The position numbers and the translations under genes are program-made. A stretch of DNA of 34,818 bases, taken from the NCBI GenBank assembly GCA_000708835.1, contig DF237716.1, forward strand, positions 1 to 34,818. The letters run 5' to 3'. Each line of letters opens with the position of its first letter. Position 1 is the first letter of the stretch. This document shows, one piece after another, positions 7,849-30,600 of this stretch. The stretch comes from Klebsormidium nitens (Eukaryota > Plantae > Klebsormidiophyceae). The notes beneath the pieces were generated by a model. That model searched no databases. It was not told the origin of the DNA and saw only the letters and a list, made by a program, of their open reading frames with translations.

Positions 7849-9444
7849 CTAGGTAGGAATTGCCTGATTGAGCAAAGACAAGTCAACTGCCAGACAACTG
7901 GTCAAAACTAAGAAAATGAGGTCAGGTTTTGCTTTTGGACGTACCTTGATGTATCTCTCCACAGATAGCGGGTCTGGCCACTGCCCGAGAAGCCGGCCGC
8001 GGGTGGTGACTCGCACACCCAATGCTGCCAACGCTGTCTCAATCAGTTTTTTTCTCGCCTCCTCTAGTTCCTGCTCTTTCAGATTGTATAACCGCATGCG
8101 CCGAATCCGCTCCAGCGTGATGGACGTCGTGTGCTCCCTATGTTTCAAGTACTCCAGAAAAACACCCTCGGAGTACGGGACGCTGTCTAAGAAGGTTTTG
8201 ATTCGTTGAAGGTCCTTTCCATCGATGCTCCAGAAGGGGGTTTCATCACCAATGTCCAGATCCAACTCTGATTCAGGGAATCTGGCCAAGTCAGCTTTAA
8301 ACAACTTCTCGATCCACTCAAGCTCTGTGTCAAGAATCTCTTGGCGCCTTCGAATCTCGTACTCAACCTGTGTCTCGCCTGCTGGCCACCATTCTTGGAC
8401 CCTCGAAAGCTCACTCTCCCCTCCCTCTTTGTCTATCCTGTCGAGTAGGCGCTTGATTCTCCTGGATGCTGAGAAGGCGTCAAGGCTTTTCTTGACGGCA
8501 GTGTCGCAACTGCAGTTCTCTGGGTTTGGCAGCAGTGCAGAGCTCAGCACCCTTCCAATCCTGCAGGTTTGCACAGACAGTCCCGCCCCGGAACCAGGAA
8601 ACTTTTCTCTGTGGAGCAGTTGGCCTCCATCCCAACCCTGGTAGACTCCAATCAGGTGGCCATTCAGGCAACAGTGGCCGCTCACATTTACGCCGTTGCC
8701 TTTGGTTAGCTGGAAATTGAACTTCCCATCGCGGGGGACTGGCTCAGTGTCACAGATTGGATTATCGAAGATCGCAGGAGGGAGCATCACCAAGGGCGCC
8801 TGACAATACGCGCACAGGTCCGTTGCCATCTTCTGCAGTTGCTTCTGCGCATAGCCAGGCGCGTTCAGGTACGCGACAGCTCCCAATCTCCTCGCAATTG
8901 CAGAGTGCTCGAACCTCTGGACCACACCTCGGAACACCATACCCAGAAGCCCTATGGAACCGCACCGCTGGCTCCGCATCTCATGCGAGCAGGGGCTGCT
9001 GACAAAGAGAACATCTGACGCGAACTGTGCCATCAAGCCCAGGTCTTTGTTGACTTGAGGCCCCGTCTGGAAACCGCTTGCTGTTTCATGCATGTGTCCC
9101 AGGATGTCTTCGTAGACACCGGCGAGTCTCTCAGCACGCTCCCAGTTGGCACTAGTCTCAAGACCGGGGCAGTAGAGCAAGAGCTTGTAAACACCTAGCC
9201 AACCCCCTGGAGGAGATGCCGAAGTAACGCTGTACAACAGAGAGTTGCATAACGCCGGCGCCGCTTCCAAGCAGAGCTGCCTCCAGAGGTCCCCTTCCAT
9301 CACTTGTCTCCAGCGTTTGCATACGCATGCAAGCGCCACCAAATGCATAGGGCTTGGCCCCAGCTTGAGGAAAATCGAAGCGAGCAGCTCTTGGCCCAGA
9401 TCTTCTACTGTAACCGTGCCGGTGTTCCGCTTCATCGTCGCCAT
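7849..9444 (-). CDS. EID1-like (EDL family) F-box protein with a long charged C-terminal extension
   Basis: 541-codon open frame; first ATG at 9444 (MATMKRN). N-terminal F-box LGQELLASIFLKLG..LACVCKRWRQVMEGDLWRQLC, then EID1/EDL-type motifs KLLLYCPG, DVLFVSSPCSH, VFRGVVQRF, CAYCQAPL, CCLNGHLIG. The last about 30 codons may be intronic (AAG|GTACGT donor at 7945/7944). Confidence 0.85.
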   Translation of the reverse strand: MATMKRNTGTVTVEDLGQELLASIFLKLGPSPMHLVALACVCKRWRQVMEGDLWRQLCLEAAPALCNSLLYSVTSASPPGGWLGVYKLLLYCPGLETSANWERAERLAGVYEDILGHMHETASGFQTGPQVNKDLGLMAQFASDVLFVSSPCSHEMRSQRCGSIGLLGMVFRGVVQRFEHSAIARRLGAVAYLNAPGYAQKQLQKMATDLCAYCQAPLVMLPPAIFDNPICDTEPVPRDGKFNFQLTKGNGVNVSGHCCLNGHLIGVYQGWDGGQLLHREKFPGSGAGLSVQTCRIGRVLSSALLPNPENCSCDTAVKKSLDAFSASRRIKRLLDRIDKEGGESELSRVQEWWPAGETQVEYEIRRRQEILDTELEWIEKLFKADLARFPESELDLDIGDETPFWSIDGKDLQRIKTFLDSVPYSEGVFLEYLKHREHTTSITLERIRRMRLYNLKEQELEEARKKLIETALAALGVRVTTRGRLLGQWPDPLSVERYIKVRPKAKPDLIFLVLTSCLAVDLSLLNQAIPT

Positions 9445-10159
9445 GGAGAAGGGGGCTGGATTGCTTCTCAGCACGTAAGAAAGTCCAGCTGGAATGCGTC
9501 CCCTGATCCCCTAGACCTAACCCCAGAATGCAGCTTCTTCCCCATGCCCCATTCTCAGAATCCTGGAAATGCACGCAGCAAGCTACGATCTAGGTACGAG
9601 GGAAACAATGGATCGGCAATGGTTATTGGCCAGGCCGCCCGGCCAGACCGTCTGACCGGACTGCGCGTCAACCATTCCCACTCCGAGCCGGGCCTGTGCA
9701 TGATCACCACTTCATGCGGTGACTCTAGCTGGAGTGGAGGCAGGAGTCAGGACACGCCCGCCTACCTTCAAAAAACATACCGTAGTAGCCTGACAGGAAG
9801 GCTGTCCACTCCAGCCTTCACAACCCGATCAGGGCGCAGAGGTCATCAGGCTTAAGGTCAGCTTTTTATGAGGGGTGTTGCTACTATTATAGGCGGGGAG
9901 CACTGTGAATTTAGCCGTGCAAAGCGAACAAAGTGGAGGAGCCAGAATCCGGATCTCAGTAAGATCAAACGGGGCGCAGTTGCCGATGAGATTAGCGCAG
10001 ATCAAGACGGTGACTCGTACTTGCAGCCCTGTCTGAAAGGTTTGGACCTAGACTCTAAGCTGCCCATCTTGGCTAAGTTTGACCTTTTTCACACGCACGC
10101 AATTTGCTGCTTGATCCCAGATAATGTGGTCTACTAAGGGCTGAAACTTTAGTCACGCT
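9445..10159. promoter_or_regulatory. Short intergenic region between divergently oriented F-box and threonine deaminase genes (candidate bidirectional promoter plus both 5' UTRs)
   Basis: The two start codons (9444 minus, 10160 plus) are 715 bp apart, head to head. No specific motif identified. Confidence 0.5.
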
Positions 10160-10672
10160 ATGCCAGCATTAGCGACCCCTCGCCTGACCAGCGGGGGGGT
10201 GCTCAACCACTCTTCTCAGGCCCCCGTTGCTGACAAGTTTCCCAGTCGGCAGCTTTCACCAGAGGCTTTCAAAGTCAGTAGCTTCTCGTTTTCTGGCTCC
10301 ACTTTTGGCAGCCCCATATTTACAGGAAGATCAGGAACAGAAGAGCTGTTTAAGGTCAGCGGGAGGAACCGCGTGGTTCAGCAGAACTGCGCACGATGTG
10401 AAGTGGCAGCCAGAGAGTCGTTCCGCAGAGGCGATGATGTCAGCAGGCCTGGTGGGGGGTGGGGCACGACGCCAGCAAGAGCGGCCGGGCCCATTCGCAA
10501 ACGGGGGGCCAGCGTGCGATGCCGAGTTGCTGCTAGGGAAGCCCCCCCGGGGGCGGACAAACTGGCGCTTCCTGTAATTGAGGAGGAGGTCCCGGCAACG
10601 TGTGAAAAGGCCCCGGAGCTGCCGAAGTACGCGGCCCCTGAGTTCCCTAGGAGACTGCCGTCGCAATTGCAG
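10160..10672 (+). CDS. OMR1: Threonine deaminase exon 1 (Ser/Arg/Ala-rich transit-peptide-like N-terminus, 171 codons)
   Basis: ATG at 10160, open frame to CAG|GTGCGC at 10672/10673; phase 0 fits exon 2. No recognisable catalytic homology, so the start is inferred. Confidence 0.7.
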
Positions 10673-13600
10673 GTGCGCACATGTTTATTCTCCCTCTCGA
10701 AAACCTGGGTTGCACACTGTTGAGTTCCCCCTCTTGAAGATGTAGAGAGAGCTGGTCCTAACCACTGTGCGTTGAGGCGGACTGTATGTGCAGAGATCTG
10801 CTATCCTGCCCCAGAATTCACTAGACTGCTTTCTTTGCGCTGGTGCGCTTGTTTTCATTTGAGAATTGATACTTCTTCTCTTATGCTTTGGTCGTGGGGC
10901 TGTAGCCGGCTGTGAGCGTTGACTGGGAAAGTTTGTGGGTGTCCAACTTAGCACAGTGGTTGGACCCTGGCAAAGTTCAGAATGTACACATGCAACTCTA
11001 TGTATCCACTCACTTGTGAAGGGAGTCGGTTCCGAGATGACGGTGCCGTTGGGGATCGTGACAATTTGTTACATGTCTGTTACATACTTGTTACACTATG
11101 CACATATTTCTTTACACGAGACCTTGCCTGATCGATTGTTGCGGTGCCTTCCGTCGAGCGAGGCAGTTCTAGTTTGTTCTTTAAGTGTGGACTTAAATAG
11201 GAGGAGGGCATGCTGGTAGAAAGCAGCAAACTTATGCAGAAAAGGAAACGCTTCTTCTTCGGGAGCCGGTCTGCTGTTTAAACTAAAGCAATGGAAACAC
11301 CGTGATCATCGTGTTCCATTGAATCATCGTGTTTCCATTGTGATATGGGTACATCAGTGACTCTGCCTTTTTGCCCCTGGTACGAGGAAAGCTTCCTGCA
11401 GAGATAAGCGCTTTCACAAGAGGGTCGGTTGACCAGACTTGGAAAGACCAATCCCTTCAATCGAAATCGTTCATCTTGTCTTTGGTTTGATCGTTCATTT
11501 CGTGCCACTTTCAAGTGCTCCTGGTTGCTCGCTCCTCCTTTGCAGTGTGAAGCGGGCATGCTGGGGGGGTCAGCGAGTTCTGACTATCTTATCATCGTTC
11601 TTACTTTCAAAACCTTATAGCCAGTCGTTTTGGTTATTTGATACTACGAGGACATGCTGGGAGGAGTCAGCGCGTTTTGACCATTCACTTTTGTTGACAC
11701 TTTCGATTTATTATTTTTGTGCGCTTTTCTTTACAGTACGAAGAAGGCATGTTGGGAGGAATCAGCGCATACACACGGGGTGTCGGCCGGCTAGACTTGG
11801 GGGCAGACACACTATCATACCTGAAGAAGATTCTGACGTCACGAGTGTATGACGTGGCAATCGAGTCTCCCCTGGAGCGCGCAAACAAGATCAGCGACCG
11901 GATGGGAGCGGACATCTTCCTCAAGCGGGAGGATCTGCAAAAGGTGCGCACGCCCCTCTAGCTGTCTCGTTTTTCTTTTCCTACTTGTCTGCAGCCTTTG
12001 TTTGCCCGGCTTTCTTTCACGATGCTTTTCTGACCTGTGGCAACTGGATACTCTACTGCAGCAAAAGGGCCAACTGGAGAGGCAACCTGTATTCTGTTGG
12101 CTTGTTGTATTTTGAGTGTCGGTAGATGGAGAACAACTGGTTGCTTGCTCTTGATCCAGTGGTCTTTTTCTTCGTTGATAGACTGCCTTTACCGTGATCA
12201 AGCTAGACACTAGTGTGCTTGTCTGAGTGTCTCTCCCATCTCGTCGGGTGTTGCTGTCTCGTCAAAATAATCGTCATTGCTTCACTTCGGAACAGTTTGG
12301 GTTTGTCGAGTCTGGCCGTCAAACCAAGCCCCAGCTTCCCAATCGTGTTGCTTGAGAACGCTTTGACCCAGTGTGGTGTTTGGCAGTTGAGTCGTACCGT
12401 GCAGAGAACCAAACCCCTCTATTTGTCACTTTCACTGGCATCTGATTCCAGAATCTTACAAAGTTCGAAGTGAACCCTTCGAGGGGATCTCAAGTTGCTC
12501 GTTTGCAACATGATGGCCCAATCAAAACGGTCTTGGAAGGGTATCGTCTGCTCATCCCGCAAGTATAGCGATCCTTTCAAGCTTCTTTATGGTCATGCTG
12601 CCTTCCGTTTATTAACCCGCTTCTAACATACTTCTTGACCAGGTTTTCTCCTTCAAGCTACGTGGCGCCTACAAGATGATGGCGCAGCTGCCGCAAGACG
12701 CCCTTGAAGGAGGGGCATCTGCCTTGACTGCTAAATTTTCAGATTCTCTAAAGTCTACGTTTTTCTTACGATGGTTTCTTAACTCATTTCAAACCTACTT
12801 CTTGACCAGGTTTTCTCCTTCAAGTTGCGCGGCGCCTACAACATGATGGCGCAGCTGCCGCAAGATGCGCTCGATCGGGGAGTCATCTGCTCTTCTGCCG
12901 GGAACCACGCCCAGGGAGTCGCGCTTGCGGCGGCGCAGCTTGGTTGCAGTGCAATCATTTGCATGCCGGTTACGACACCTGCGATCAAGGTGGGTGGTTT
13001 TGAATCGAGCTTCTGGCTTTGGGGTTCATGGCTGAGGGTATCTAAGGATCATATTGCTTCTCGATCTTAGGTTCTATGGCGTTTGACTTGGGGGTTTTTG
13101 AGTTGCATTCGAGCTTGAAGTTCAGAGGTTAGAAAGACATCGCTCTGCCAGGTACAATGGCCAAAGGATGGTACTCACCGCAGCAGCTCAGATGCAGCGA
13201 AAGTTTTTGGATATCGCTAACCACACCCGCAACTAAGATACGCAATACTGGTGCCTCAGATTTCCAAGCTTTTAGATTAGTCTGTATAGACCGAGAGGTG
13301 GCTTTGACCAAGCAGAGGGTGCTGTGCTAGGAGTAATAACATCAGATTGAGAAACGTTTCTGCATTGAGAAAGCGAAGCTCAAGTCCTTTCGGAATCATT
13401 TTAGGAACTTTTTGGCAGAGGTTCCGGCGAGCTGCGCTCGCTTCTGGATACGTGACGCGACCACTCTTGATTAATTGTCTTTCATAATCGAGTCGCGCAA
13501 GTTCTGGACAGCGAATAAGTAGGGGACCTTATCTAGCAATAGGAGGACTCGGTATTGCGCGTTCCGCAAGCACGTAGCTCTTCTTCGCTCATCCTACAAG

Positions 13601-16600
13601 ACGCAGGCATGTGCTAAGCAGACGACGCTTGACGGGCCGAGAGGAGGGGTCACACGCAAGCCTGGTTTTGCGCTTTGAAGAAAACAGTTTCTGAGAATCA
13701 CTTGTGTCATTGCAATGGAACTCTGCGGAAGCGTCTCGGAGCAACCGTGGTTCTGGTGGGCGAAGCGTACGACGAGACGCAGGCACATGCCAAGCAGAGG
13801 GCTCTCGAGGAGGGCTCTCAAATGAGGTCAAACGCAAGCTCGTTGTTCGAGATTTTCAGCAACGCTTCGCTCACGGTTACTTCCTTTCTCTGCAGTGGAA
13901 CTCCGTGAAGCGGCTCGAAGCAACCGTGGTCCTAGTGGGTCTAATTTCCCTGACACACCGCCGAAATTTTTTAAGTCAATACAATCCAGCCTTAAAAGAG
14001 ACCGCAATAACTCGGCGTAAGTACATTCGAACTTACTGCAGTCCACGTTCGTTTTTTGCAGTGGAACTCTGTGAAGCGTCTCGGAGCGACGGTGGTCCTG
14101 GTTGGTGAGGCGTACGATGAGACGCAGGCATTTGCCAAGCAGAGGGCGCTCGAGGAGGGCCGCGTCTTCGTGCCGCCGTTCGACCACCCTGACGTCATTG
14201 CGGGACAGGTGAGGGGCCTGCTGACGTCAGTGTAGCTCCTTGGTTGGCTGCGTGCGCCGTTTTTGAGAGCGCGTTCAACTGGCAGCGCCAAATCTTGGGA
14301 ATCTTCCACCAAACAAATGCCGTTGGAGCAGCTGTCGAACACCGTTGATGACATCATTCCGGGATTCCAAATTCGCGCTAGTTTTGCTGATGTAGCAGCA
14401 CTGCCAATTATAAGTCCTCACCCGCTATTTTCCTGCTAGGTTCGTCATACACTACTCTTGTTTCGTAGACTTCGTAAGTTTTTTGTTTTGACAGCGACCC
14501 CAGTTCAAAGCGCACCCGAGAGCTAGGGCGTTGGAGGTCACACTCTCCCTATGACACTTCTCGTGCTTGAGTCCGAACTCCGAAATGCGAAACGACTTCG
14601 TTGCGGGGGGGGTGGACTTTCCGACAACCCGAGGATGAAGCAGATTGTCTTTCGTTATCTCTTTCTGCACACCAGATCTCTGTTTTCTTGGCAGGGCATT
14701 GCCGGCATGGAGATTCTATGTCAGCATCCAGGGCCTTTTCACGCCATTTGTGTTTGGTCGGGGGAGGGGGTCTAGTCGCCGGCATCGCAGCATATATGCA
14801 CTGCCTGCTTCCGGACTTTTGGGTCATGGCACCGTCGGCATGGATATCTTTGCGGCAGCATTCACTCCGTATTTGTTCCAATCGGGGGAGGGTGCTTATC
14901 TGAAATGCCACTTTCTGAATTGCTCGGTCATCTATAGAGCACGGTCGGCATAGAGATCCTTCGTCAGCACCGGGGGCCTATTCACGCCGTCTTCGTTCCA
15001 GTCGGGGGAGGGGACCTGATAGCCATCATCGCGGCGTATGTGTACTGCCTCCTTCGCCGAAACTCTGGAAGCTGTAAAAAGTTCAATCTTTTTTTTTTTT
15101 GCAGGGCACCGTCGGCATGGAGACTCTTCGTGAGCACCCAGGGCCTATTCGCGCCGTCTCTTTTTCAATCGGTGGAGGGGGCCTAATAACCGGCATCCCG
15201 GCTTATGTGAAATGTCTCCTTCGCCCAAACTTGAAATTTCGAAGCTGTTAACAGCTTAACCTCTTCTTACAGGGCACTGTTGGCATGGCAATCCTGCGCC
15301 AGCACCCGGGACCTATTCACGCCGTCTTCGTTCCAGTCGGGGGAGGGGGCCTGATAGTTGGCATCGCGGCGTATGTGTACTGCCTCCTTCGACGAAATTC
15401 TGGGTCATGAAGCTGTAAAGAGTTCAATCTTTTTTTTGCAGGGCACTGCCGGCATGGAGACTCTTCGTGAGCACCCAGGGCCTATTCACGCCGTCTCCTT
15501 TGTAATTGGTGGAGGGGGCCTGATAACCGGCATCATGGCTTATGTAAATGCCTCCTTCGCCCAAACTTGAAATTCGAAGCTGTTAACAGCTTAATCTCTT
15601 CTTACAGGGCACTTTTGGCATGGAATCCTGCGCCAGCATCCGGGGCCTATTCACGCCGTCTTCTTTTCAGTTGGTAGGGGGGCTGATAGCTGGCATCGGT
15701 TCGGCTTAAAGATTCTGACCTACTTCAAAGGTCGTTGATTCGTCAAGAACTCATTTACCATTCCTTTTCAGGGGACTGTCGGCATGGAAATTTTACGCCA
15801 GCACCCAGGGCCTATTCACGCCGTCTTCGTTCCAGTCGGGGGAGGGGGCCTGATAGCCGGCATCGCGGCTTATGTGAAATGCCTCCGGCCAGAGGTCAAA
15901 ATAATCGGAGTGGAACCAGCGGATGCAAACGCGATGGCGCTGTCGCTGCACGAGGGGCAACGCATCTGCTTGGACAAGGTAAGTTCTGCGGCTTCCATGA
16001 GGCACTTTGTATATCAGTCCTTGCCTTTGTCCCGCCTTTCTCGTGGATTGTGTCGACTCGATTGAGGACGGGCTCTGGCTCGCAGAGGACAGCGCAGTAG
16101 CTTGGACAAGGTGAGTAGTATGGCCCCAAGAGGCCTTTCTGAATCACCGTCTGTCCCGCCGAAATTGTAATTTACTGTTAGTTTAATCTCGTCTGGGGGA
16201 TACCAACGCAGGACATCGGAGTTGCTTGGACAAGGTACTTTCTGCGGCTTCTTAACTGGCGTTTCTTTCTGACTACCTTACTCTGTCTTGCCGTTGGGTT
16301 GGCCTAATCACGGCTGCGCTAACACGTGTCCAAGCGCATCTGCTTGGACAAGGTAGTTTGCGTCGCTTCGAAAGAGGTCTTTCGTTCTGCCTCCTTGCAC
16401 TTCGTCTCGCCGTTGGGTTGATTCCGTTGAAGGCTGGGCTACTGGAGCGGATAGCGCATCTACTGGACAAGGTAATCGGCGTGTTTCGAAAGAGGCGTTC
16501 TGTTCTTAACCCTTCACTTTGCCCTTATAGTGGATAGCGACTTCCTCTGCTTTATTAACGCATTTCTTAATCGCAGTATCTGCCGGAGACTCAGCGCTAC

Positions 16601-19600
16601 AGACATGCTGCTCTCACCCGAAGCGCCGGCGAAGCATTGGACGTAGTTTCAAGAAAATATTTTTGGCATGTGCGCGGTTTTGCTGATGGCGTGGTCCCCA
16701 AATTGGTCGGCGACGAGATTTTACGCATCTGCCGGGAACTTATCGAAAAAGATGTGTTCTATTCAGAGTCTTTGGGGGAGTCAATGGTAAATCCCTCCTT
16801 ATTGATTTTCTTCTCAGGTGGGCGCTTTTTCCGACCGTTAAAAATGGTCGGCGACGAGACCTTCCGCATCTGCGGGAACTCTTCGACCGTGTCATTTTAC
16901 ATCGACTGCAATCAGGATGATAGAAAGACTCATGCGAACCTCTTTTTCGCAGGTCGGTTGTTCCGCAGACGGAGTCGCAGTCAAAATGGTAGGTAACAAG
17001 ACGGTCTGCATCTGCCGGGAACTCATTAACGGCGGCATTTTGATCTCCAGTGCAACTCAGCGATGATAAGAAGACTCATGCGAACCTCTTTTTCGCAGGT
17101 CGGCGGTTTCGCAGACGGAGTCGCAGTCAAAATGGTCGGCGATGAGACGTTCCGCATCTGCCGGGAGCTCATCCACAAACCGCTTTTTTTCTCGAAATCC
17201 CTGGGGTTTCCTTAATGATTTCTTATTATCTTTCTTTCTTCTCAGGTGGGCGCTTTTGCTGACAGAGTCGCAGTCAAAATGGTCGGCGACAAGACGTTCC
17301 GTCGCCGGGGACTCGTGAATCGTTTCTTTCAAGAAAGTCATGCAAAACCTCACGATAGTCTCCTCTTTGCAGGTGGGCGGTTCCGCAGATGGAGTTGCAG
17401 TCAAGATGGTCCGCTTTTGCCAAAAACTCGTTCGCAGACTTCTTTACCTTCTTAGAACGTTGATTTGAAAGCAGAGGTTTTTTATTTTTCTTTTTCAGGT
17501 GGGCGGATTCGCTGACGGCGTGGCCGTCAAGATGGTCGCCGACCAGGCGTTCCGCGTCTGCCGAGAACCCATCAGCAATTCCTTTTATGGTCTCTGGAGA
17601 TTCCTTACTTAGTTTCTTTCTTTTCAGGTGGGCGGTTTCGCTGACGGGGTTGCGGTCAAAATGGTCGGGGACGAGACATTCCGCATCTGCCGGGAGCTCA
17701 TCGACGGCGTCGTGCTCGTCTCCAAGGACGCAATTTGCGCCGCGATCAAAGACGTCTTCGAAGAAACGCGGTGCATTCTGGAGCCAGCTGGCGCGCTCGC
17801 ATTGGCTGGCGCGAAAGCCTATGTCAAGTACAACGATTCGCAAAAGGGGGGGTCCAGCAACGGGGCGGCGAGGGGGGGCGCGGGATCGATGGTGGTGATT
17901 ACGAGCGGGGCGAATATGAACTTTGACAGGCTAAGGTGAGCTTTCAAAATAGCCGTTTTTGGATTGCGGGATCTGTAGCCTACGAATCTCCGACAGTCTC
18001 TGCCTTTTCGGTGAGACGCCTCCTTAGTATGAGATGCTGGACCAGTCTCATCTGTGGTCGTCAGGTCTCGCAAGCCTGCATTTCAATTCACTACCAACGT
18101 GACTTCGATAGGGTCCGGCCCAAGTCCCGAGTCATCGGTCTTTCGCAGAATAACGGCCCGGCGAAGTAGCGAAGCAACGCCTTTTGTTCGTGCGCAAGTG
18201 TTGACCCAATCAGTGCTTCCGATCCTCATCAGCAGCTTTGAACTTCAAATTGCTGACGTGGCCCCGTTCTATAAACTTTGGTTGGCTCCATACGAGCCCC
18301 ACTTAATTAACGTGCGAACCTGAGCCGTCAGCTGCGGATATTATGAGGATGAGGAGCAGATAGGGGGTTCGTAGACGCCTCTCTTCAGCATGCCATAATC
18401 ATTCCAACTCCTGAACCAGTTTTCATACGTGTGGATATCTCCTACTCATAACCACAACAAACCTGGAGACAAGGCTCTGCGAAGCACGACTGAATATGGT
18501 AGGGAGAGGTTCGAGGTCAGTTAGTCAGCTTTGAGGGGCCGAGAGCCTGCTGAAACTTTCTCTTCTTTCAGAACAGTCGACATCAGTCAGGCGGTTGGCT
18601 TCAATTCATAACAAGGTTCAAGAAAGGGAGGCCCTTTCTGTCGTTTTCTCGCAGGGTTAAACTTGTCGTCGCGACGAGTATCCCCCAGCGCTCTGGAAAG
18701 GTTCTGGACATTTCTCCTCGATTCTGGCCAAAATCTTACTTCTCCACTTGGTTCTACTTTTATGACAACGAGAGGAGTATAATGCACTGTGATTGCTTCA
18801 TGCAGAGTGGTTGCAGAACTTGCCGAGCTCGGCGAACGGAGAGAAGCGACTCTTGCGACAAGCATCCCCGAGCGCCCCGAAAGTTTGAAGGAGCTTTCTC
18901 TTTGGATTCCTTGTCAACGGTTTACTTGTTCCAACCTCATTCCAGTTTCAAAACGACAAGAGGACTCAAACGCACTGTGGTTGGCCCATGCAGAGTCGTC
19001 GCAGAAGTGGCGGAGGTTGGCGAGAGGAGAGAAGCGGTGCTTGCGACGAGCATTCCTGAGCGCCGCGGAACGTTCAAGGAGCTTCTCTGTTTGATCCTGG
19101 TCAAAAACTCACTACTATGCACTTTGTTCTGGGCTTAAATCGACAAGGGGATTGAGTTGCACTGGTTGCCCCATGCAGAGTCGTCGCAGAACTTGCCGAG
19201 GTCGGCGAAAGGAGAGAAGCCGTTCTCGCGACGAGCATCCCGGAGCGCCCCGGAACGTTCAAGGAGTTTTGCCGGCTGGTGGGGCCAGATATCAACATCT
19301 CGGAGTTCAAGTATCGGCGGGCAGACGACGCGGCAGCGCACGTGTTCTACAGCGTAAACGTGGCAAACGACGAGGAGCTGGCGAATCTGCTCGCGAGGAT
19401 GGCGAATGCGGAGTTTCCGACGATCGATATGAGCAGCAACGACCTGGCGAAGACGCATCTGAGGCACTTGGTGAGGATCTACAGACGCTTTTTCCGACGT
19501 CGGTTTTTCTTTCCGCTTAGTCGGGATCCAAAACTGGCGATACTTTTCTTGATGAGAACGTGGCGTGGAGTGACATGCTGGAGAAACTGCTGGCGAGAAC

Positions 19601-21281
19601 GGCGAAAGCGGAGTTTCCGACGATCGACATGAGCAGCAACGACTTGGCGAAGACGCATCTGAGACACTTTGTAAGTATTTTGAGACTTTTTCCTTGGAGC
19701 TCAGGTTTTTCTTCCATGACATTTGAACATTTGAGAATCTGAACTGCGGTCACTGAACCTGATTAGGACTGGCAACCGATGAGGAGCTGCCGAATCTCAT
19801 GGCTCTTATGGCGAAAGCGGAGCTAACGACCGAGATGTCTAGTAACGACTCGACAAAGACGCATCTGATTTATTTATCCGAGAACTTTTGTTGAACCCTC
19901 CAAGTCTTCCATCCAAGCGTTCGTTCATCCGAGATCCTGAACCAATGAGCGAGCGATGCGATGCCTATTTTCATCTTATGAGCTGCTCGGGAGAACACTT
20001 TGGAGCTCCCTTTAGCAAGTCATTTCTAAGTGCCTGTGGGCTCACTGTCCGCAGCTGAAAGGGAGTCTTGTAAGATTCCATCCTACCAGCACTCAGCTAC
20101 TAACTTTGAGTTCTCCGTCCGCAGTAACCTTCGATTTGGCGCCTGTCAGCACTCAGCCCTGATTTGTGAACTCCTTTTGTTCTAGGTGGGCGGGAGGAAC
20201 AGCGTAGAAGACGAGGTTTTGTACCGGTTCGAGTTTCCGGAGCGGCCCGGGGCGCTGCTCAAGTTCCTAGACTTCCTCAGCCCGCGGTGGGACATCACGC
20301 TTTTCCACTACCGAGCCGAGGTGGGTTATCTTGTCAACCCGTTTTCAGAAAGTCATTGTGCTGGGTTTGTTTCTGCTACTACCGCAAACATAGAATGTTC
20401 TTTTCAAGTTCCTAGACTTCCTCAGCCCACGTTGCTTGTAACGTTTTAGCTCGTTAACCCTGTCTGTTGCATACCTAACGCTTTCTTGCTGGTGAACGAG
20501 GAACTAGGAAAGGTTCTGTTCTTGAGATCTTGTACTTTTTTAGTCCGTGGTGAATCACGAGCTTCCACTCCCGAGCCGAGGATGGTTACCTCTAACCCGC
20601 GTGATCGCTTTTGCTTCTGTTTGAACCTTAAAAAGGGCGTCAGATTTCAAAGCGCACCAGTGGCATCTGAGTCCTGAGGGAAAATGTCATCGGACGGACT
20701 ACAATGCATCTTGAAATATTGGCTCAGCGACCAGTTTGCCCATTTCTGCGGGTTTTGGTCGCCGAGGCGTGACGGGTCCCAGGACGCCCTCTGTAAGTCG
20801 TACCGCCCTTGCCATCGCCCTTGTTCACCAGCGACGGAGCACAGGGGCGTCGTCTCATTTCCTTCTCGTGTCCGCTCTTGCAAGGCTCCGCCGCTTTTAT
20901 GTGTCGTTCTAGAAGCTTTGTCTTGAAGCCGCACGTTTGTCCACAAATCTTTTTTTTGCCTTCTGCTTTTTGACGAACGTGTGGGATGGATGCTTCGAGA
21001 AGCTTCCTCTCAGGATCCGTTGATCTGCTCTCGGCCCTTTTTTCCTTGCTTCGAGTCGAACGTATGGGGATGTATGTTGTAAAAGCTTGTTTGCGGATCT
21101 TCTTTTTGCTCACGAGCCTTTTCTTTCCTGTATGCTTCAGGGCGAACGTGTGGGAAACGTTCTGGTGGGGCTCCAGATTCCGCCAGCCGAAGAAGCACAG
21201 TTCCGGTCAGCGGCCGACGCTTTGGGTTACCAATACGTCTCGGAGGGCAACAACGAAGCGTTCCGGATGTTTTTACGCTAG
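10160..21281 (+). CDS. OMR1: Biosynthetic threonine deaminase/dehydratase (IlvA/OMR1 type), plastid-targeted, 9 exons, about 709 aa
   Basis: Exons 10160-10672, 11737-11943, 12810-12989, 14062-14208, 15772-15978, 17628-17935, 19179-19470, 20186-20320 and 21141-21281 join in frame with GT-AG introns. Motifs: [18 protein letters not shown] (PLP lysine), [56 protein letters not shown], and two ACT-like units ([22 protein letters not shown]). Confidence 0.95.
11195..11736 (+). repeat. Degenerate intronic echoes of the exon-2 acceptor/start
   Basis: Partial copies of TACGAAGAAGGCATGTTGGGAGGAATCAGCGC at about 11200, 11546 (after tgcag) and 11645. Confidence 0.6.
11737..11943 (+). CDS. OMR1: Threonine deaminase exon 2
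   Basis: ttacag|TAC ... [42 protein letters not shown]|gtgcgc. Confidence 0.93.
12475..12809 (+). repeat. Intronic echoes of the exon-3 acceptor/start (167-bp unit)
   Basis: tacttcttgaccag|GTTTTCTCCTTCAAG..ATGATGGCGCAGCTGCCGCAAGA at 12643 and 12810; a more decayed copy near 12490-12517. Confidence 0.9.
12810..12989 (+). CDS. OMR1: Threonine deaminase exon 3 (PLP-binding lysine)
   Basis: ccag|[13 protein letters not shown]...[14 protein letters not shown]...MPVTTPAIK|gtgggt. Confidence 0.95.
13590..14061 (+). repeat. Intronic echoes of the exon-4 acceptor/start
   Basis: Copies start at 13716 (acceptor mutated to CAA) and 13896 (intact tgcag); partial copy at about 13595; real exon at 14062. 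Confidence 0.9.
14062..14208 (+). CDS. OMR1: Threonine deaminase exon 4
   Basis: ttgcag|[26 protein letters not shown]...[14 protein letters not shown]|gtgagg. Confidence 0.95.
14680..15771 (+). repeat. Seven intronic echoes of the exon-5 acceptor/start, about 167-bp period, alternating A/B units
   Basis: Copies start at 14695, 14828, 14938, 15105, 15273, 15442 and 15608; real exon at 15772; the last five spacings are 167, 168, 169, 166 and 164. Confidence 0.95.
15772..15978 (+). CDS. OMR1: Threonine deaminase exon 5 (Gly-rich phosphate-binding loop)
   Basis: ttcag|[36 protein letters not shown]...VKIIGVEP...ICLDK|gtaagt. Confidence 0.95.
15979..16500 (+). repeat. Downstream echoes of the exon-5 end/donor (TGGACAAG|GT)
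   Basis: GT after TGGACAAG at 15979 (real), 16111, 16235, 16353 and 16472; spacings 132, 124, 118, 119. Confidence 0.9.
16660..17627 (+). repeat. Seven intronic echoes of the exon-6 acceptor/start
   Basis: Copies start at 16670 (AG lost), 16818, 16953, 17099, 17246, 17373 and 17499; real exon at 17628; spacings 126-148 bp. Confidence 0.95.
17628..17935 (+). CDS. OMR1: Threonine deaminase exon 6
   Basis: ttcag|[27 protein letters not shown]...[12 protein letters not shown]...[10 protein letters not shown](R)|gtgagc, ends in phase 2. Confidence 0.95.
18640..19178 (+). repeat. Intronic echoes of the exon-7 acceptor/start (185-188 bp unit)
   Basis: catgcag|AGT(C/G)GT.GCAGAA copies at 18806 and 18994, decayed copy near 18655; real exon at 19179. 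Confidence 0.92.
19179..19470 (+). CDS. OMR1: Threonine deaminase exon 7 (first ACT-like regulatory unit)
   Basis: tgcag|a [31 protein letters not shown]...EFKYR...[11 protein letters not shown]|gtgagg. Confidence 0.95.
19560..19875 (+). repeat. Downstream echoes of the exon-7 end/donor (about 200-bp unit)
   Basis: GCGGAGTTTCCGACGATCGA..AAGACGCATCTGAG.CACTT|GT repeated with a donor at 19671; decayed copy ending at about 19870. Confidence 0.9.
20186..20320 (+). CDS. OMR1: Threonine deaminase exon 8 (second ACT-like unit)
   Basis: tctag|[45 protein letters not shown]|gtgggt. Confidence 0.95.
20404..20600 (+). repeat. Downstream echoes of exon-8 internal and 3' sequence
   Basis: 20404-20428 is identical to 20259-20283 (TCAAGTTCCTAGACTTCCTCAGCCC); TTCCACT.CCGAGCCGAGG recurs near 20560-20582. 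Confidence 0.8.
20925..21140 (+). repeat. Short (about 85 bp) echoes of the exon-9 start
   Basis: CGAACGT(G/A)TGGG follows unit starts at 20972, 21055 and the real exon at 21141. Confidence 0.65.
21141..21281 (+). CDS. OMR1: Threonine deaminase exon 9 (terminal)
   Basis: ttcag|[14 protein letters not shown]...[19 protein letters not shown], typical IlvA C-terminus. Confidence 0.93.
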   Translation, partial: GERVGNVLVGLQIPPAEEAQFRSAADALGYQYVSEGNNEAFRMFLR

Positions 21282-23325: not shown

Positions 23326-23688
23326 GATGGGCCGGCGGCCGCTCAGTTGTCCTCAAACCCCTAAGGGAAGGTCATTTTGTAGTGAACCCCCTATGTTCAG
23401 TCCAGAGCCCCTCAAGACCCGAACGGCCAAGCCCCCCCCCCCCTCCGGCTGTATGAATATGTGTATTTTGCGGCTTTTTTGCCCCTGAGAACAGCATTTT
23501 CAGATCCCGATATTACAACAGATTCCGAGCCTGCGGCTCGACCATGGCCGAAACCCCGAGCCCCCCCCCCCCTCCCGCCGCCCTGAGGATTCCAAACCCC
23601 CAACCCCCACCCTCTGAACTGAACATAGGGGGTCAGCTTCAACATGACCTTACCCTAATGAAAAGGTGGGGCCTCCGCCGGCCGGATC
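23326..23688. mobile_element. Foldback / MITE-like element with imperfect inverted arms
   Basis: ACCCCCTATGTTCAGTCCAGAG (23386-23407) vs CTCTGAACTGAACATAGGGGGT (23612-23633) pair at 21/22; pairing continues outward (AAGGTCAT/ATGACCTT, GGCCGGCGG/CCGCCGGCC). No clear target-site duplication and no ORF. Confidence 0.55.
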
Positions 23689-26451: not shown

Positions 26452-27598
26452 GTAAGTCAGACATTTGCCCCTTGACTTGGTGAAGTTTTCCAAAATCTTG
26501 ATTGGTGTTTTGAGAGCTGAGGTTTTGTTACACTTCCTATGTCAACGTTTTGACTCGGCGGCTGGATCGGTATGTGTTTTGACAAGACCAATGACCTTAC
26601 CTGGAACCATTTACAGCTTTGGTTAGTTTTTTGGCCCCTTGTATGCTTATTCTCCTGTCAAAATTACTTTGCTGCAAAAGTCGACTTCTCTGAGGTCTCT
26701 CTGGCCAGCCGATACAGGCGTATGTTGAAGTTGCATCAAGCATATGATTGCCCTACTTGTAGAGCTTACTCGTGACAAATGTTCAACGGTTCAAACAACG
26801 CAGTCCCCTGAGTTGTCCTTTCAGCAAAGAGCACGTTCCAGATCCACCATTTTTGCCCTTTTTTTCTTCCTATTTTGCTGTTGTCATGAGTTGCTAAGGT
26901 GATGTCAGCGCAATGAACGATCTTGTGAACTAAAGAAGGGACTCTGAGCTGACTTGTCTTTTGATTGGAGAAATGTTTGAAATCTTAAGGATTATTCCTT
27001 TCACCCTCTCTTGGATCTATGCTTCAGACGGGATCCTCGGCTAAGATTGTTTCACCAGATAGCTACAACACGATTGTAATTTGGAGAGCCTAGATCAGAT
27101 ATTCCCGCCCTTCATCTTAACATTTCTTTCTTCTGATTACCGGTTGAGAACTCCGCTCTCCGTCATCCTTCATCCGCGCTCGATCTTGGGAAATCGAACA
27201 TGGAGACTCGCCCCTGATCTTAAGACTCGACAATTCCTGCTCCTCTTGGAGCAGGAAAGAGGATACGCACGGGGGCGCCAAGCTGATGCCTACACAGGTC
27301 TTGAAGGTACCCCTCCCGTGCTCTCTGCCTTGCACCCCCACAGATTTCCCTCTCTTTCTTACCCCTTCGCAAACCGGTCCTTCAGCCATCGATATTGAGA
27401 TATTTTTACTCTTCTCTCCCTTGCAGCCAAAGATGGGTCACGCGGGAGCCCCAAGCTGATGCACACACAGGTCTCGAAGGCATCCCTCCCTTGCTCTTTG
27501 CCTTGCACCCCCACGAATCTCTCCCTCCTTCTACCCCTTCGCAAATGGTCCTTTCATCCATCGACATTGAGAATCATTTACTCTTCTCCCCCTTGCAG
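26452..27598 (+). other. Probable 5' UTR intron of the NAL1-like gene
   Basis: Consensus donor CAG|GTAAGT at 26451/26452 and acceptor ccttgcag 6 nt before the ATG at 27605; pairing of the two sites is inferred. Confidence 0.4.
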
Positions 27599-27650
27599 CC
27601 AAAAATGGACTCACGCGGAGGCCCCAAGCTGATGCACACCCAGGCTCTTT
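27240..27650 (+). repeat. Three 172-bp tandem units covering the acceptor and ATG-containing exon start of the NAL1-like gene
   Basis: gcag| unit starts at 27255, 27427 and 27599, spacing exactly 172; shared CCAAGCTGATGC..AC.CAGG, and CCTTGCACCCCCAC in the two upstream units. Confidence 0.95.
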
Positions 27651-30600
27651 GCCCGGGTCGCCCTACCAACAAAAGCCCGACGTTCATCACCGACAAGCGC
27701 CCCGTCACGGGGGCCCTCGACAAAACGTCCCCCGACAAAACGATGACGGCATTCAAGGAGAACGTGCAAGGGCAGCAGGGGTTTCGACGGGCGTACCGGT
27801 CGGCGGGGTCGCATCCGGACGTCGTGTCGGGAGCGACGATGGTGTGGCCTCCAATGGCCGGGAAGAATGGTACCGCGCACGAGCGGGCGCTGTTTTTTGC
27901 GTCGTTAGGGGCGGGGCAACGGGCAGGGCCAGTGCACGAACGCGAGGCGCGGACTCTGTACGACCTGATGCTGATCCGGGGGTGCAACAGCAAGCTCTTA
28001 CAGCACTACTCCAGCATTCTCGGGACTGCGCTCGGGTTACGGACAACCAAGGGTTTGCTAACCACGCAGCCGGCGATCGTCGTCTATGTCTCGCGCAAGG
28101 TTAACCAGGCGTGGTTAGACGACCACCAAACCCTCCCCGACAAGCTCCGCGGCCCCGACGGCCTCTGGTGCGACCTCGACGTGATCGAATTCGCGGACGG
28201 CACCGCGCAAAAGGCGGAGAGCTACTCCGGGTTAGCGGATGGGTTACGGGGCGGCGACACGCAGATCGGCCCCGGTTCGCAAGTCGCGACGTCGGAAGTT
28301 TACGGGACGCTGGGCGCAATCGTTCGGTGCCGGTCACAGAAGCGGTTAGGGTTCTTAACCAACCGGCACGTGAGCGTGGATTTAGACCAACCCCTCCAGA
28401 AACTGTACCACCCACTTCCCCCGGTGCTCGGGGCGAACGTGTACCTGGGGACCGTCGAGCGGGCGGTCTCGTACGCGACAGATCATCTGTGGTACGGCAA
28501 GTTCTGCAGCCCAAATCCAGGTGAGATGGTTGAAAATGCTCAGCGTTTGGTTTCTTTGAGAGACGTGTCTGCTACGTTCTGCTTCTTCTCTATAATTCTG
28601 CTTTTGGATGTGAGAGCTGTCGAAAGGGCGGTCGTGTGTGCTGCTGTTTCTGAGGACCAGGACGTCTCGCAGTCGTAATCCAGCTCTGCGAGCCTGCTGT
28701 CCGCTAAGCAGTGCGAAGTCAAGGTTCGGTTTATGTGAGACTCTTTTACTCAGACGAATGGAAGTCTTATGGTCTCATAAGAAGAGCGGGAAGGACGTGA
28801 GTCTTAAGTTCACGGCCAGGGTCCTCCTTTCCACTTGCATCCTGCAACCAGCCTAGAAAAGTGTCAAAGCTGGAAAAGAGTCCAATCCAGCCCCTAAACC
28901 GGCCCTGCAGATGAAGTTCTGTCTATTGCCGAAGTTGCGCACTCACATCCACCAGTGACATCGGACTCGAGTTCTAAAACTTAATCGCCTGTGTGGGATT
29001 CCTTGACTCCCAGGTCATTTTTTCAGTTATGACGTCTTGGTAATTGAATCTGCTCCACGTGCAGATTCCAAACCGTTTGCTGCAAAGTTGGGCCGAGGAA
29101 AAGGAGCTTTCCCCAGTTGCACGGTCCAGAATTTGTTTCGATGCAGTTCCATCTTGGAAGTTCGCGCCGCTGGACGCGCAGATTGTCACATTCTGCGTAC
29201 TCGAATGTGCTCTACGTGCACTTTTTGAACCACCACTTCTTCTCGTATAACCCTGGTTAAGATGCAGATTCTTAACCCGCTACTTCGACTAACCTAACCC
29301 TGTGTAATGTGCAGACTCTTTCGTCCGCGCCGACGGCGCATACGTTCCCTTCGCCGACGACTTCAACCTGCACCAAATCACACCCGAGATGAAGGGGATC
29401 GGGAAGCTCGGGCCGGTGTTCGAGATCGACCTGGAACTGCCGGTAACTAGCATAGTGGGGAAAAAGGTGCATAAAGTCGGTCGGACCACTGGGCTGACGA
29501 CAGGTGTCATCATGGCGTGCTCGGTGGAGTACGACGACGATAAAGGGATTACGATCTACACGGACTTCCTGGTACTGGGGGACAAGGGAAACCCGTTCGA
29601 CGCCGAGGGGGATAGCGGGAGTCTGATCGTCATGCATGTGAGTGGATTACTTTGATCCAACTTACTAGATCGGACGAAGCTCCGTCTTATTATCGTTGAA
29701 ATTGATCGGACAGTCTCGATGTGGAGCGACGCACGACGAATTCCCTCTGGGCTCTGGGCAGTGATTGAGGATTCAATTTATATTACGGGCAGTCATTGAG
29801 AACTTTTATTGGGATCAGGGCAAGAACTGCTGTTTCATACTGGATTGTGGGCTCTTGAGCCAACCTACAGTGGATGAATCCAGCGTCTTCCAACTTTCGC
29901 CGCTTTCCCGACTTCACGAGGGTCGTGGAGATTGTGCTTGGCTCCATCATTTGAAAACAGGCACTTGCAACCAGCGTCGATCGATCTGACCGGTTCATAC
30001 GCTTTGCTTGAAGTCAAAATTTGAGTTCTTTTACAGCATAGCACCTCAAGAGTGGTTTCTGGCGCAACCTTTCTGCTTTCAGTAAAATCTGACGTTGCTT
30101 GAGGTCTCCGACACCTGACTAGTCGTAGTAAATGTCAACCAATCTTGACCATCCTTTCGACAATTGTCTCCACATGCCCAGGGCGAGGGCAACAAGTTTC
30201 CCGCCGGCGAGGCGAGGGACGACAACCGGCCTTCGACGTTCCGCTTTCGAAGTCTCAAAACACCCAACTTCTCTTTGACTTAGAAACGCAGAACTGATGC
30301 AAACAGCTTTTGGCTTTGCGGTGCAAATGCACAAACTTGTCTGCCTTCTTTGGGGTAACGTCCAGTAGTAGGTGCTCGAAAGCGAGGGCCCGCTTTTCTT
30401 ACCTGGCCATACCTTTTTACAGGATCTCTTGTGACTATCTGCACATCTCAAAGCCCTAAGCTGTTAACGGCAAAAACCCGGCGTGAAAGCCCTTGAGATG
30501 ACTGATACGCGACCGTTTTCTTATAGGGCGAAGACAGGAGTCTGCCCCGTCCGATTGGGCTCGTCTGGGGGGGCACCGTAAACCACGGACGCTTAAAACT

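Follow-up and report, generated by a model that had tools for sequence, protein, structure and literature searches.

Internal (partial) gene duplication, reportedly surveyed by Gao and Lynch in 2009 (PNAS 106:20818), is the described category nearest to the pattern examined here. In such duplications, segments of a gene are repeated in tandem within that gene, some of them crossing exon-intron boundaries, and the outcome is often silent as the original splice sites stay in use. The present analysis concerns the threonine deaminase gene of Klebsormidium nitens, located on contig DF237716.1 (GenBank assembly GCA_000708835.1; positions 1 to 34,818 of the forward strand, with the whole 34.8-kb stretch referred to as the window). 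Its introns were found to be populated by truncated copies of the gene's own splice junctions, here termed echoes. The echoes share with internal duplication the direct, adjacent arrangement of the copies (36 of 36 on the + strand) and what is counted as a DNA-level origin within the lineage. They differ from it in that 36 fragments at 11 of 16 junctions make up 39 to 62% of the intron DNA of a single gene, with units limited in size to ~165 nt, multi-copy arrays, and recurrence in every relative examined. Searches of the literature turned up no account of junction echo arrays, and the view taken in a preliminary description of this DNA, that no named system matches them, is fair.

Other described systems resemble the echoes in part. 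Tandem exon duplication giving mutually exclusive exons, reportedly treated by Kondrashov and Koonin in 2001 and by Letunic et al. in 2002, likewise places copies derived from an exon, equally oriented, in the neighboring intron. Echoes, however, are truncated, carry a single splice site, are not spliced in, and are not conserved as coding sequence. With no complete copies, no alternative inclusion beyond one mini-exon at ~2%, and no retention of coding capacity, this category was rejected, and alternative or mutually exclusive exons were ruled out by the RNA joints. Decoy exons, said to have been described by Parra et al. in 2018, and recursive ratchet splice sites, which are known in Drosophila and human, share with the echoes the presence of strong splice signals within introns, some of them reading AG|GT (six exon 6 echoes), but the assembled RNA contigs and the relatives examined here gave no indication that the sites are conserved, that introns are retained, or that splicing proceeds stepwise. 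Small tandem duplications are reportedly explained by a patch-mediated model (Vaughn and Bennetzen, 2014) and are said to arise from paired nicks (Schiml et al., 2016). To our knowledge, duplications from the repair of staggered nicks or breaks are mostly shorter and have not been reported as concentrated at splice junctions or in arrays. As known from plants and animals, they resemble the echoes in being direct and tandem and in showing short microhomology at the joint (CTG in one relative). Fill-in by Pol alpha-primase has been given as a further source of small tandem duplications (PMC8355091). Intron gain in which an exon segment containing AGGT is duplicated in tandem, as reviewed in PMC3443670, is similar in that a short tandem duplication is tolerated as splicing removes the extra copy. 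It was set aside, as no new intron has arisen; all eight introns lie at the same positions in the relatives, and an existing intron is extended. Minisatellites form comparable arrays of head-to-tail units, in which copy number changes between relatives and a mosaic makeup of the units suggests unequal exchange or conversion, whereas each echo unit derives from the adjoining exon boundary and a functional exon forms one end of the array. A transposable element or introner was also rejected; no dispersed copies were found in the window or the relatives' loci, and the units consist of the gene's own exon and intron.

In the gene model rebuilt here, the threonine deaminase gene occupies positions 10160 to 21281 on the + strand and comprises nine exons encoding 709 amino acids, with Pfam matches across the exons in the order PALP and then Thr_dehydrat_C twice. 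Exon 1 (10160-10672) carries the start codon and an N-terminal extension, and is followed by exons 2 (11737-11943; PALP), 3 (12810-12989), 4 (14062-14208), 5 (15772-15978), 6 (17628-17935), 7 (19179-19470; first Thr_dehydrat_C domain), 8 (20186-20320), and 9 (21141-21281; including the stop codon). All introns are of the GT..AG type, with a total length of 8,992 nt. The span singled out in the preliminary description, 10673-21140, opens with the first nucleotide of intron 1 and closes with the last of intron 8.

For the catalogue of echoes, each exon with its flanks was searched against the window by nhmmer, blastn, and tblastn. Every one of the 36 fragments lies in the intron adjoining its own source exon, and none was found away from it anywhere in the window by self-blastn, blastn, or nhmmer. 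In a self-blastn of the whole window, 32 of the 34 high-scoring segment pairs representing repeats fell inside the threonine deaminase gene, where Tandem Repeats Finder (TRF) reported arrays with periods of 167/335, 146, and 185 nt. Exon 1 gave no echoes when compared exon by exon with the window by blastn.

Acceptor-side echoes, consisting of an intron end and an exon start, were detected for exons 2 (four copies), 3 (one), 4 (three), 5 (seven), 6 (seven), 7 (three), and 9 (two). The exon 2 array (11167-11736) holds four decayed copies at 11167-11230, 11364-11444, 11490-11577, and 11638-11674, seen by nhmmer and tblastn. The single exon 3 echo (12606-12723; junction positions -36 to +82) is 85% identical to the exon at a spacing of 167 nt and was recovered by self-blastn, blastn, and nhmmer. 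Upstream of exon 4, three copies (13547-13637, 13693-13816, and 13878-13940) occupy 13547-14061 by blastn and nhmmer. The exon 5 array (14682-15771; TRF, blastn, and nhmmer) has seven copies with a period of 165 to 169 nt and a superimposed 335-nt dimer repeat, while the seven exon 6 copies (16660-17627; blastn and nhmmer) have a period of 123 to 148 nt and the three exon 7 copies (18659-19178; TRF, blastn, and nhmmer) one of 182 to 188 nt. The exon 9 echoes (20935-20989 and 21013-21070, within 20935-21140; nhmmer) are weak and have lost AG.

Donor-side echoes, with an exon end and an intron start, numbered one for exon 3, four for exon 5, two for exon 7, and two for exon 8. That of exon 3 (13143-13242; nhmmer and tblastn) covers exon positions 84 to 185 and has lost GT. 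The exon 5 donor array (15979-16524; nhmmer) repeats the exon end, GT, and ~100 nt of intron with a period of 114 to 132 nt. Both exon 7 copies lie within 19471-19876, one (19556-19715) with GTAAGT kept and the other at 19768-19876, and the exon 8 copies (20403-20434 and 20520-20599, within 20321-20599) have lost GT; these were seen by blastn and nhmmer.

The polarity noted in the preliminary description, with exon starts upstream, exon ends downstream, and no complete copy other than the one contiguous with the exon, was the same in this catalogue, as was the loss of AG at 13716 and 16670. Its placement of acceptor copies before exons 2 to 7 and 9 held at all seven, although its range of two to seven copies did not apply to exon 3, with one clear copy. 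Copies said to follow exons 4 to 8 were found after exons 5, 7, and 8 but not after exons 4 and 6, and the donor-side copy of exon 3 is additional. The statement that the arrays make up much of the ~9 kb of intron was borne out: alignable echo sequence accounts for 3,549 of the 8,992 intron nt (39%), and the array spans including spacers for 5,557 nt (62%). AG was retained in 17 of 23 acceptor echoes, and GT in the four exon 5 echoes and one exon 7 echo on the donor side. Most echoes retain a good pyrimidine tract and AG. The exon stretch in the acceptor echoes is 16 to 128 nt long and lacks a donor, and the donor echoes lack an acceptor.

The mature mRNA does not include these copies. In RNA contigs from three runs of different studies, the joints 14208|15772, 15978|17628, and 17935|19179 agreed exactly with the gene model. 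Complete exons were joined and the echoes skipped, so that the open reading frame (ORF) is indeed left intact, as had been proposed. Intron depth was ~1 to 3% of exon depth in the deepest RNA run and about zero over most introns in the two other runs, and hence raised intron retention of the kind associated with decoy exons was absent from all three. As a separate observation, RNA runs X5 to X12, from two studies, hold 0.3 to 0.6 of the sampled words of 14165-20164, compared with ~0.15, equal to the exon share, in the other runs; these libraries therefore contain appreciable pre-mRNA or DNA.

The sole exception to skipping is an echo-derived, in-frame mini-exon of 36 nt at 16953-16988 on the + strand. 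The echo at 16953 is a copy of the exon 6 start that supplies the acceptor, and mutation has given it a new GTAGGT donor. Inclusion was ~2% in one RNA run, where the joint 16988|17628 had a depth of 9 versus 484. Exon 5 contigs also showed a loose end, at the 3' edge of the exon, that matched 16955 onward, consistent with the same mini-exon. Twelve residues are added, duplicating the motif that follows. That the only echo seen in mRNA is one with an acquired donor fits a model in which the others are ignored for want of a partner splice site, as far as a single case can indicate.

Relatives were traced from the 93%-identical exon 6 peptide P0151 and its 90% cluster, which led to loci L002, L083, and L084 (JGI metagenome 3300060285) and to Logan contigs L085 to L087. 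Metagenome contigs were also scanned with the exon 6 peptide, but the hits were all bacterial threonine deaminases of 55 to 63% identity, and the scan was uninformative. The orthologous gene was present in all relative loci with the same intron positions. Four Klebsormidium-like loci each carry 20 to 27 echoes in this gene (~25 in L002 and 27 in L083, broadly at the same junctions), with differing copy numbers. Approximately 70% of junctions bear arrays in every relative, and no echo was found away from its source exon in the relatives' loci. Between K. nitens and the relatives, the introns are unalignable and the exons 80 to 86% identical, whereas L002 and L083 are collinear with introns ~83% identical, and most of their large length differences fall at echo arrays. 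In alignments of exon starts, echoes grouped with the exon of their own species and carried its species-specific substitutions. Together with the differences in copy number, this grouping indicates continuous turnover by a recurrent process, in line with the earlier proposal that recurrent duplication expands the introns.

A few echoes in the relatives are inverted. L002 (7123-7332, - strand), L083 (7484-7614, -), and L084 (3471-3620, -) share, upstream of exon 5, a copy of that exon's start in inverted orientation, which could base-pair with the exon in the pre-mRNA; inverted copies are absent from K. nitens. The three loci from JGI metagenome 3300060285 are distinct and ~80 to 83% identical over 11 to 13 kb, and could represent co-occurring species or homeologous copies in one genome.

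Over 84 pairs of successive copies from three species, the spacing had a median of 164 nt and an interquartile range of 144 to 179 nt, with a small tail near multiples. In L083, a young copy upstream of exon 2 that is absent from L002 matches the real exon at 64 of 67 positions in its exon part, including six L083-specific substitutions in common, while its intron part is ~65% identical. The intron of this upstream copy is the ortholog of the L002 intron, and CTG microhomology is present at the novel joint. In K. nitens, identity between the units at 16953 and 17099 is 94% across the intron part and the first 36 nt, but only ~75% beyond. Such mosaic units suggest gene conversion or unequal exchange between echoes and exon, and the inverted copies in relatives and the CTG microhomology are taken as signs of origin at the DNA level. 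Because the intron halves of older units have decayed, their breakpoints are beyond recovery, and the L083 joint is the one that could be read.

The substitution pattern of the echoes was examined for constraint. Compared with the exon, echoes gave a raw ratio of nonsynonymous to synonymous differences (pN/pS) of 0.26, with one stop in ~700 codons; part of this bias (half) is expected, since the real exon changes only synonymously, and the synonymous bias is mostly a reflection of constraint on that exon. When changes on the echo lineage were polarized with L002, 111 of 168 unique events were nonsynonymous, with 2 stops in addition. The clearest result came from 12 orthologous echo pairs of L002 and L083, which differed by 18.9, 14.6, and 17.2% at codon positions 1, 2, and 3, the same level as the 16.7% found in flanking non-echo intron. 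This flat profile at the intron rate shows that the echoes evolve neutrally, and coding constraint was dropped as a candidate. Echo-to-echo sister pairs were also considered as a neutrality test, with two qualifying pairs, too few for use. The retention of AG in 17 of 23 acceptor echoes was judged compatible with neutral decay, given the estimated divergence. At third positions, there were 54 cases in which the echo had the state of the ortholog's exon and it was the K. nitens exon that had changed; the echoes are therefore fossils of older synonymous exon states. Such older states, together with duplication of echo from echo as in the 335-nt dimers, account for variants that are shared among echoes and absent from the exon. 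The echoes are thus neutral relics rather than a system.

We consider it probable that these relics stem from recurrent, size-limited tandem duplication, followed by instability of the arrays and occasional conversion, with a filter imposed by the viability of splicing. Founding events would be tandem duplications of DNA, typically of 125 to 200 nt with a median of 164, each across an exon-intron boundary. Once two copies exist, copy number could shift by unequal exchange or template switching, and the exon-derived parts of an array may occasionally recombine with, or be converted by, the real exon. A duplication wholly within an exon would break the reading frame and be lost, whereas one spanning an acceptor would survive only with enough intron, at least ~43 nt here, to supply the real exon with a branch point and pyrimidine tract of its own. 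This survival filter would leave exon starts upstream, exon ends downstream, and only the exon-contiguous copy complete. With no donor downstream of acceptor copies and no acceptor upstream of donor copies, exon definition would be predicted to fail and splicing to ignore them. Copies anchored to a slowly evolving exon would stay recognizable long after pure intron duplicates had faded, which would produce much of the junction-centered appearance. The net outcome would be growth of the introns by the share given above.

Several observations weigh against this reading. Neither generic slippage nor duplication mediated by microhomology predicts so narrow a unit size, which points to a size-setting factor, perhaps nucleosome spacing or the length of Okazaki fragments. 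Arrays spanning a junction outnumbered intron-only tandem arrays by 21 to 2 in the K. nitens gene and the L002 ortholog, giving a P value of ~0.007 under a rough null allowing for selection and half detectability. No tandem duplication of 80 to 250 nt was found in ~30 kb of flanking and intergenic DNA from the window and L002. Lastly, the polarized echo-lineage changes showed a third-position excess of 61 versus 39.5 expected (P < 2e-4, base- and CpG-matched permutation). The polarization is noisy, because the outgroup L002 differs at 48% of third positions, and the excess is provisionally attributed to polarization error with a saturated outgroup.

The best surviving alternative is that the mutational mechanism itself targets junctions, coupled to chromatin or to cotranscriptional splicing. 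In one version, breaks or nicks in the linkers flanking an exon-edge nucleosome would be followed by fill-in or reinsertion of the excised piece; in another, flaps of Okazaki-fragment size would be involved. Either would give nucleosome-sized units centered on junctions, and it is this that the narrow spacing, close to the nucleosome repeat, appears to favor, along with the arrays at ~70% of junctions in every relative, the 21 junction arrays against two intron-only arrays with shorter periods of 78 to 85 nt, and the empty flanking DNA. Exon-anchored copies are, however, strongly favored by detectability. The intron halves of the units were 0.50 identical to the real intron end, near the background of 0.37, compared with 0.79 for the exon halves, so that intron-only duplications of the same age would be invisible. 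The polarity follows automatically, because any tandem duplication crossing a junction gives it. Every acceptor unit carries at least ~43 nt of intron, as expected if selection keeps a branch point and pyrimidine tract for the real exon, and this requirement limits the exon share of a unit to about 0.7, in agreement with the observed maximum. Selection alone thus accounts for both the polarity and the minimum intron content, and with an exon share ranging from ~0.2 to 0.7 the breakpoints keep no fixed distance from the splice site. There may be some real enrichment at junctions, but targeting is neither required nor proven; of the junction-centered process put forward in the preliminary description, the crude array count favors a degree of enrichment, while targeting is not established, given detectability and the role of selection. 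We therefore regard a junction-directed mechanism as rather unlikely, and are equally doubtful of its wider form, in which a duplication process in Klebsormidium, and possibly in other green algae, would be physically coupled to exon edges and copy nucleosome-sized DNA across junctions genome-wide. The breaks involved would be phased by nucleosomes on exon boundaries or linked to cotranscriptional splicing. Such a process, if real, would rank among the major drivers of intron growth, one not described before, and would also give rise to new exons. In L002, the only tandem arrays of the gene without an exon-edge origin are a microsatellite of (GGGAACA)n and a pair of minisatellites, confined to intron, with 78- to 85-nt units (11363-11603; 14018-14267; 14543-14768).

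It is improbable that the echoes are functional splicing elements, whether decoy sites that would tune splicing or intron retention, recursive sites at the AG|GT row of intron 5, or a maintained reservoir of alternative exon starts. The intact pyrimidine tracts and AG of most copies, the use of one echo as an in-frame mini-exon, and the raw pN/pS of 0.26 might suggest a function, as might the exon 6 array, in which six echoes read CAG|GT as those of other arrays do not. Against this stand the intron-rate evolution of orthologous echoes with no codon-position pattern, AG retention at the neutral expectation, the low intron signal and rare mini-exon isoform, and copy numbers that vary freely among relatives. 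Only two exons start with GT, so recursion is not a general explanation, and for stepwise joints at the AG|GT echoes the assembled RNA contigs, which drop rare forms, showed only that of the mini-exon.

Capture of the echoes from a diverged haplotype or paralogue, or coding constraint on the echoes themselves, is more improbable still. The low pN/pS with almost no stops over ~700 codons, the variants common to echoes but absent from the exon, and the third-position excess would each be accommodated. The neutral codon-position profile of orthologous echoes speaks against constraint, however, and the 54 third-position states matching the ortholog's exon represent what the exon itself once had. 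The remaining shared variants stem from duplication of one echo from another, and the echoes contain their own exon's species-specific substitutions; with the shared variants accounted for, a foreign haplotype is unnecessary. The arrays are real: short-read unitigs break within them and one 137-nt piece has double depth, as collapsed or misjoined repeats would show, but an assembly artefact can be dismissed, since contigs of DNA run X1 tile 14165-20164 with zero differences to the assembly and flat depth, pre-mRNA contigs of the deep RNA run span parts of the arrays, and independently assembled metagenome and Logan contigs of relatives have the same architecture.

Recurrent duplication with neutral decay bears on the long-standing question of intron growth, which is usually blamed on transposons. 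In this single gene, copies of the gene's own splice junctions account for no less than 39% of the intron DNA, and by comparing relatives one can trace how copies are born, lost, and eroded. What the arrays illustrate is an unusual route of intron growth and not a working system. They also serve as dated fossils of earlier synonymous exon states, and the low-level mini-exon shows how new exons can start. In practice, they mislead gene prediction, as echo fragments are translated into predicted proteins, and they can mimic purifying selection in comparisons of exon and copy. The narrow unit of ~165 nt offers a way to test whether structural mutation is linked to chromatin or replication.

The same pattern was observed in a second gene of the window, a NAL1-like protease gene unrelated to threonine deaminase, with Pfam NAL1_N and Nal1_C in the ORF at 27395-28678. 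TRF and self-blastn identified three 173-nt units at 27255-27650 (+ strand), comprising the acceptor and first ~45 nt of the start-codon exon, and these tandem units create upstream ATGs. Outside Klebsormidium-like sequences, the GC-rich (63%) chlorophyte-like metagenome contig L001 has seven tandem pairs inside its threonine deaminase gene (9122-11630), with periods of 108 to 178 nt and an identity of 95% in some, and the duplicates appear in translation in the predicted protein P0051; as this contig was chosen for repeated matches in its predicted protein, it is uninformative on frequency. P0008, a PALP-family protein of 744 amino acids with seven matched stretches, was rejected as an echo case: it is an unrelated plant-like protein with seven perfect units of ~80 amino acids, probably produced by annotation or assembly from a plant gene fragment repeated in tandem. 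An F-box ORF of 541 amino acids runs uninterrupted on the - strand (7849-9474) immediately upstream of the threonine deaminase gene, with no repeats found inside it. Downstream of the gene, unannotated DNA contains an inverted repeat of 46 nt with 83% identity (23362-23407 and 23612-23657), its arms ~200 nt apart.

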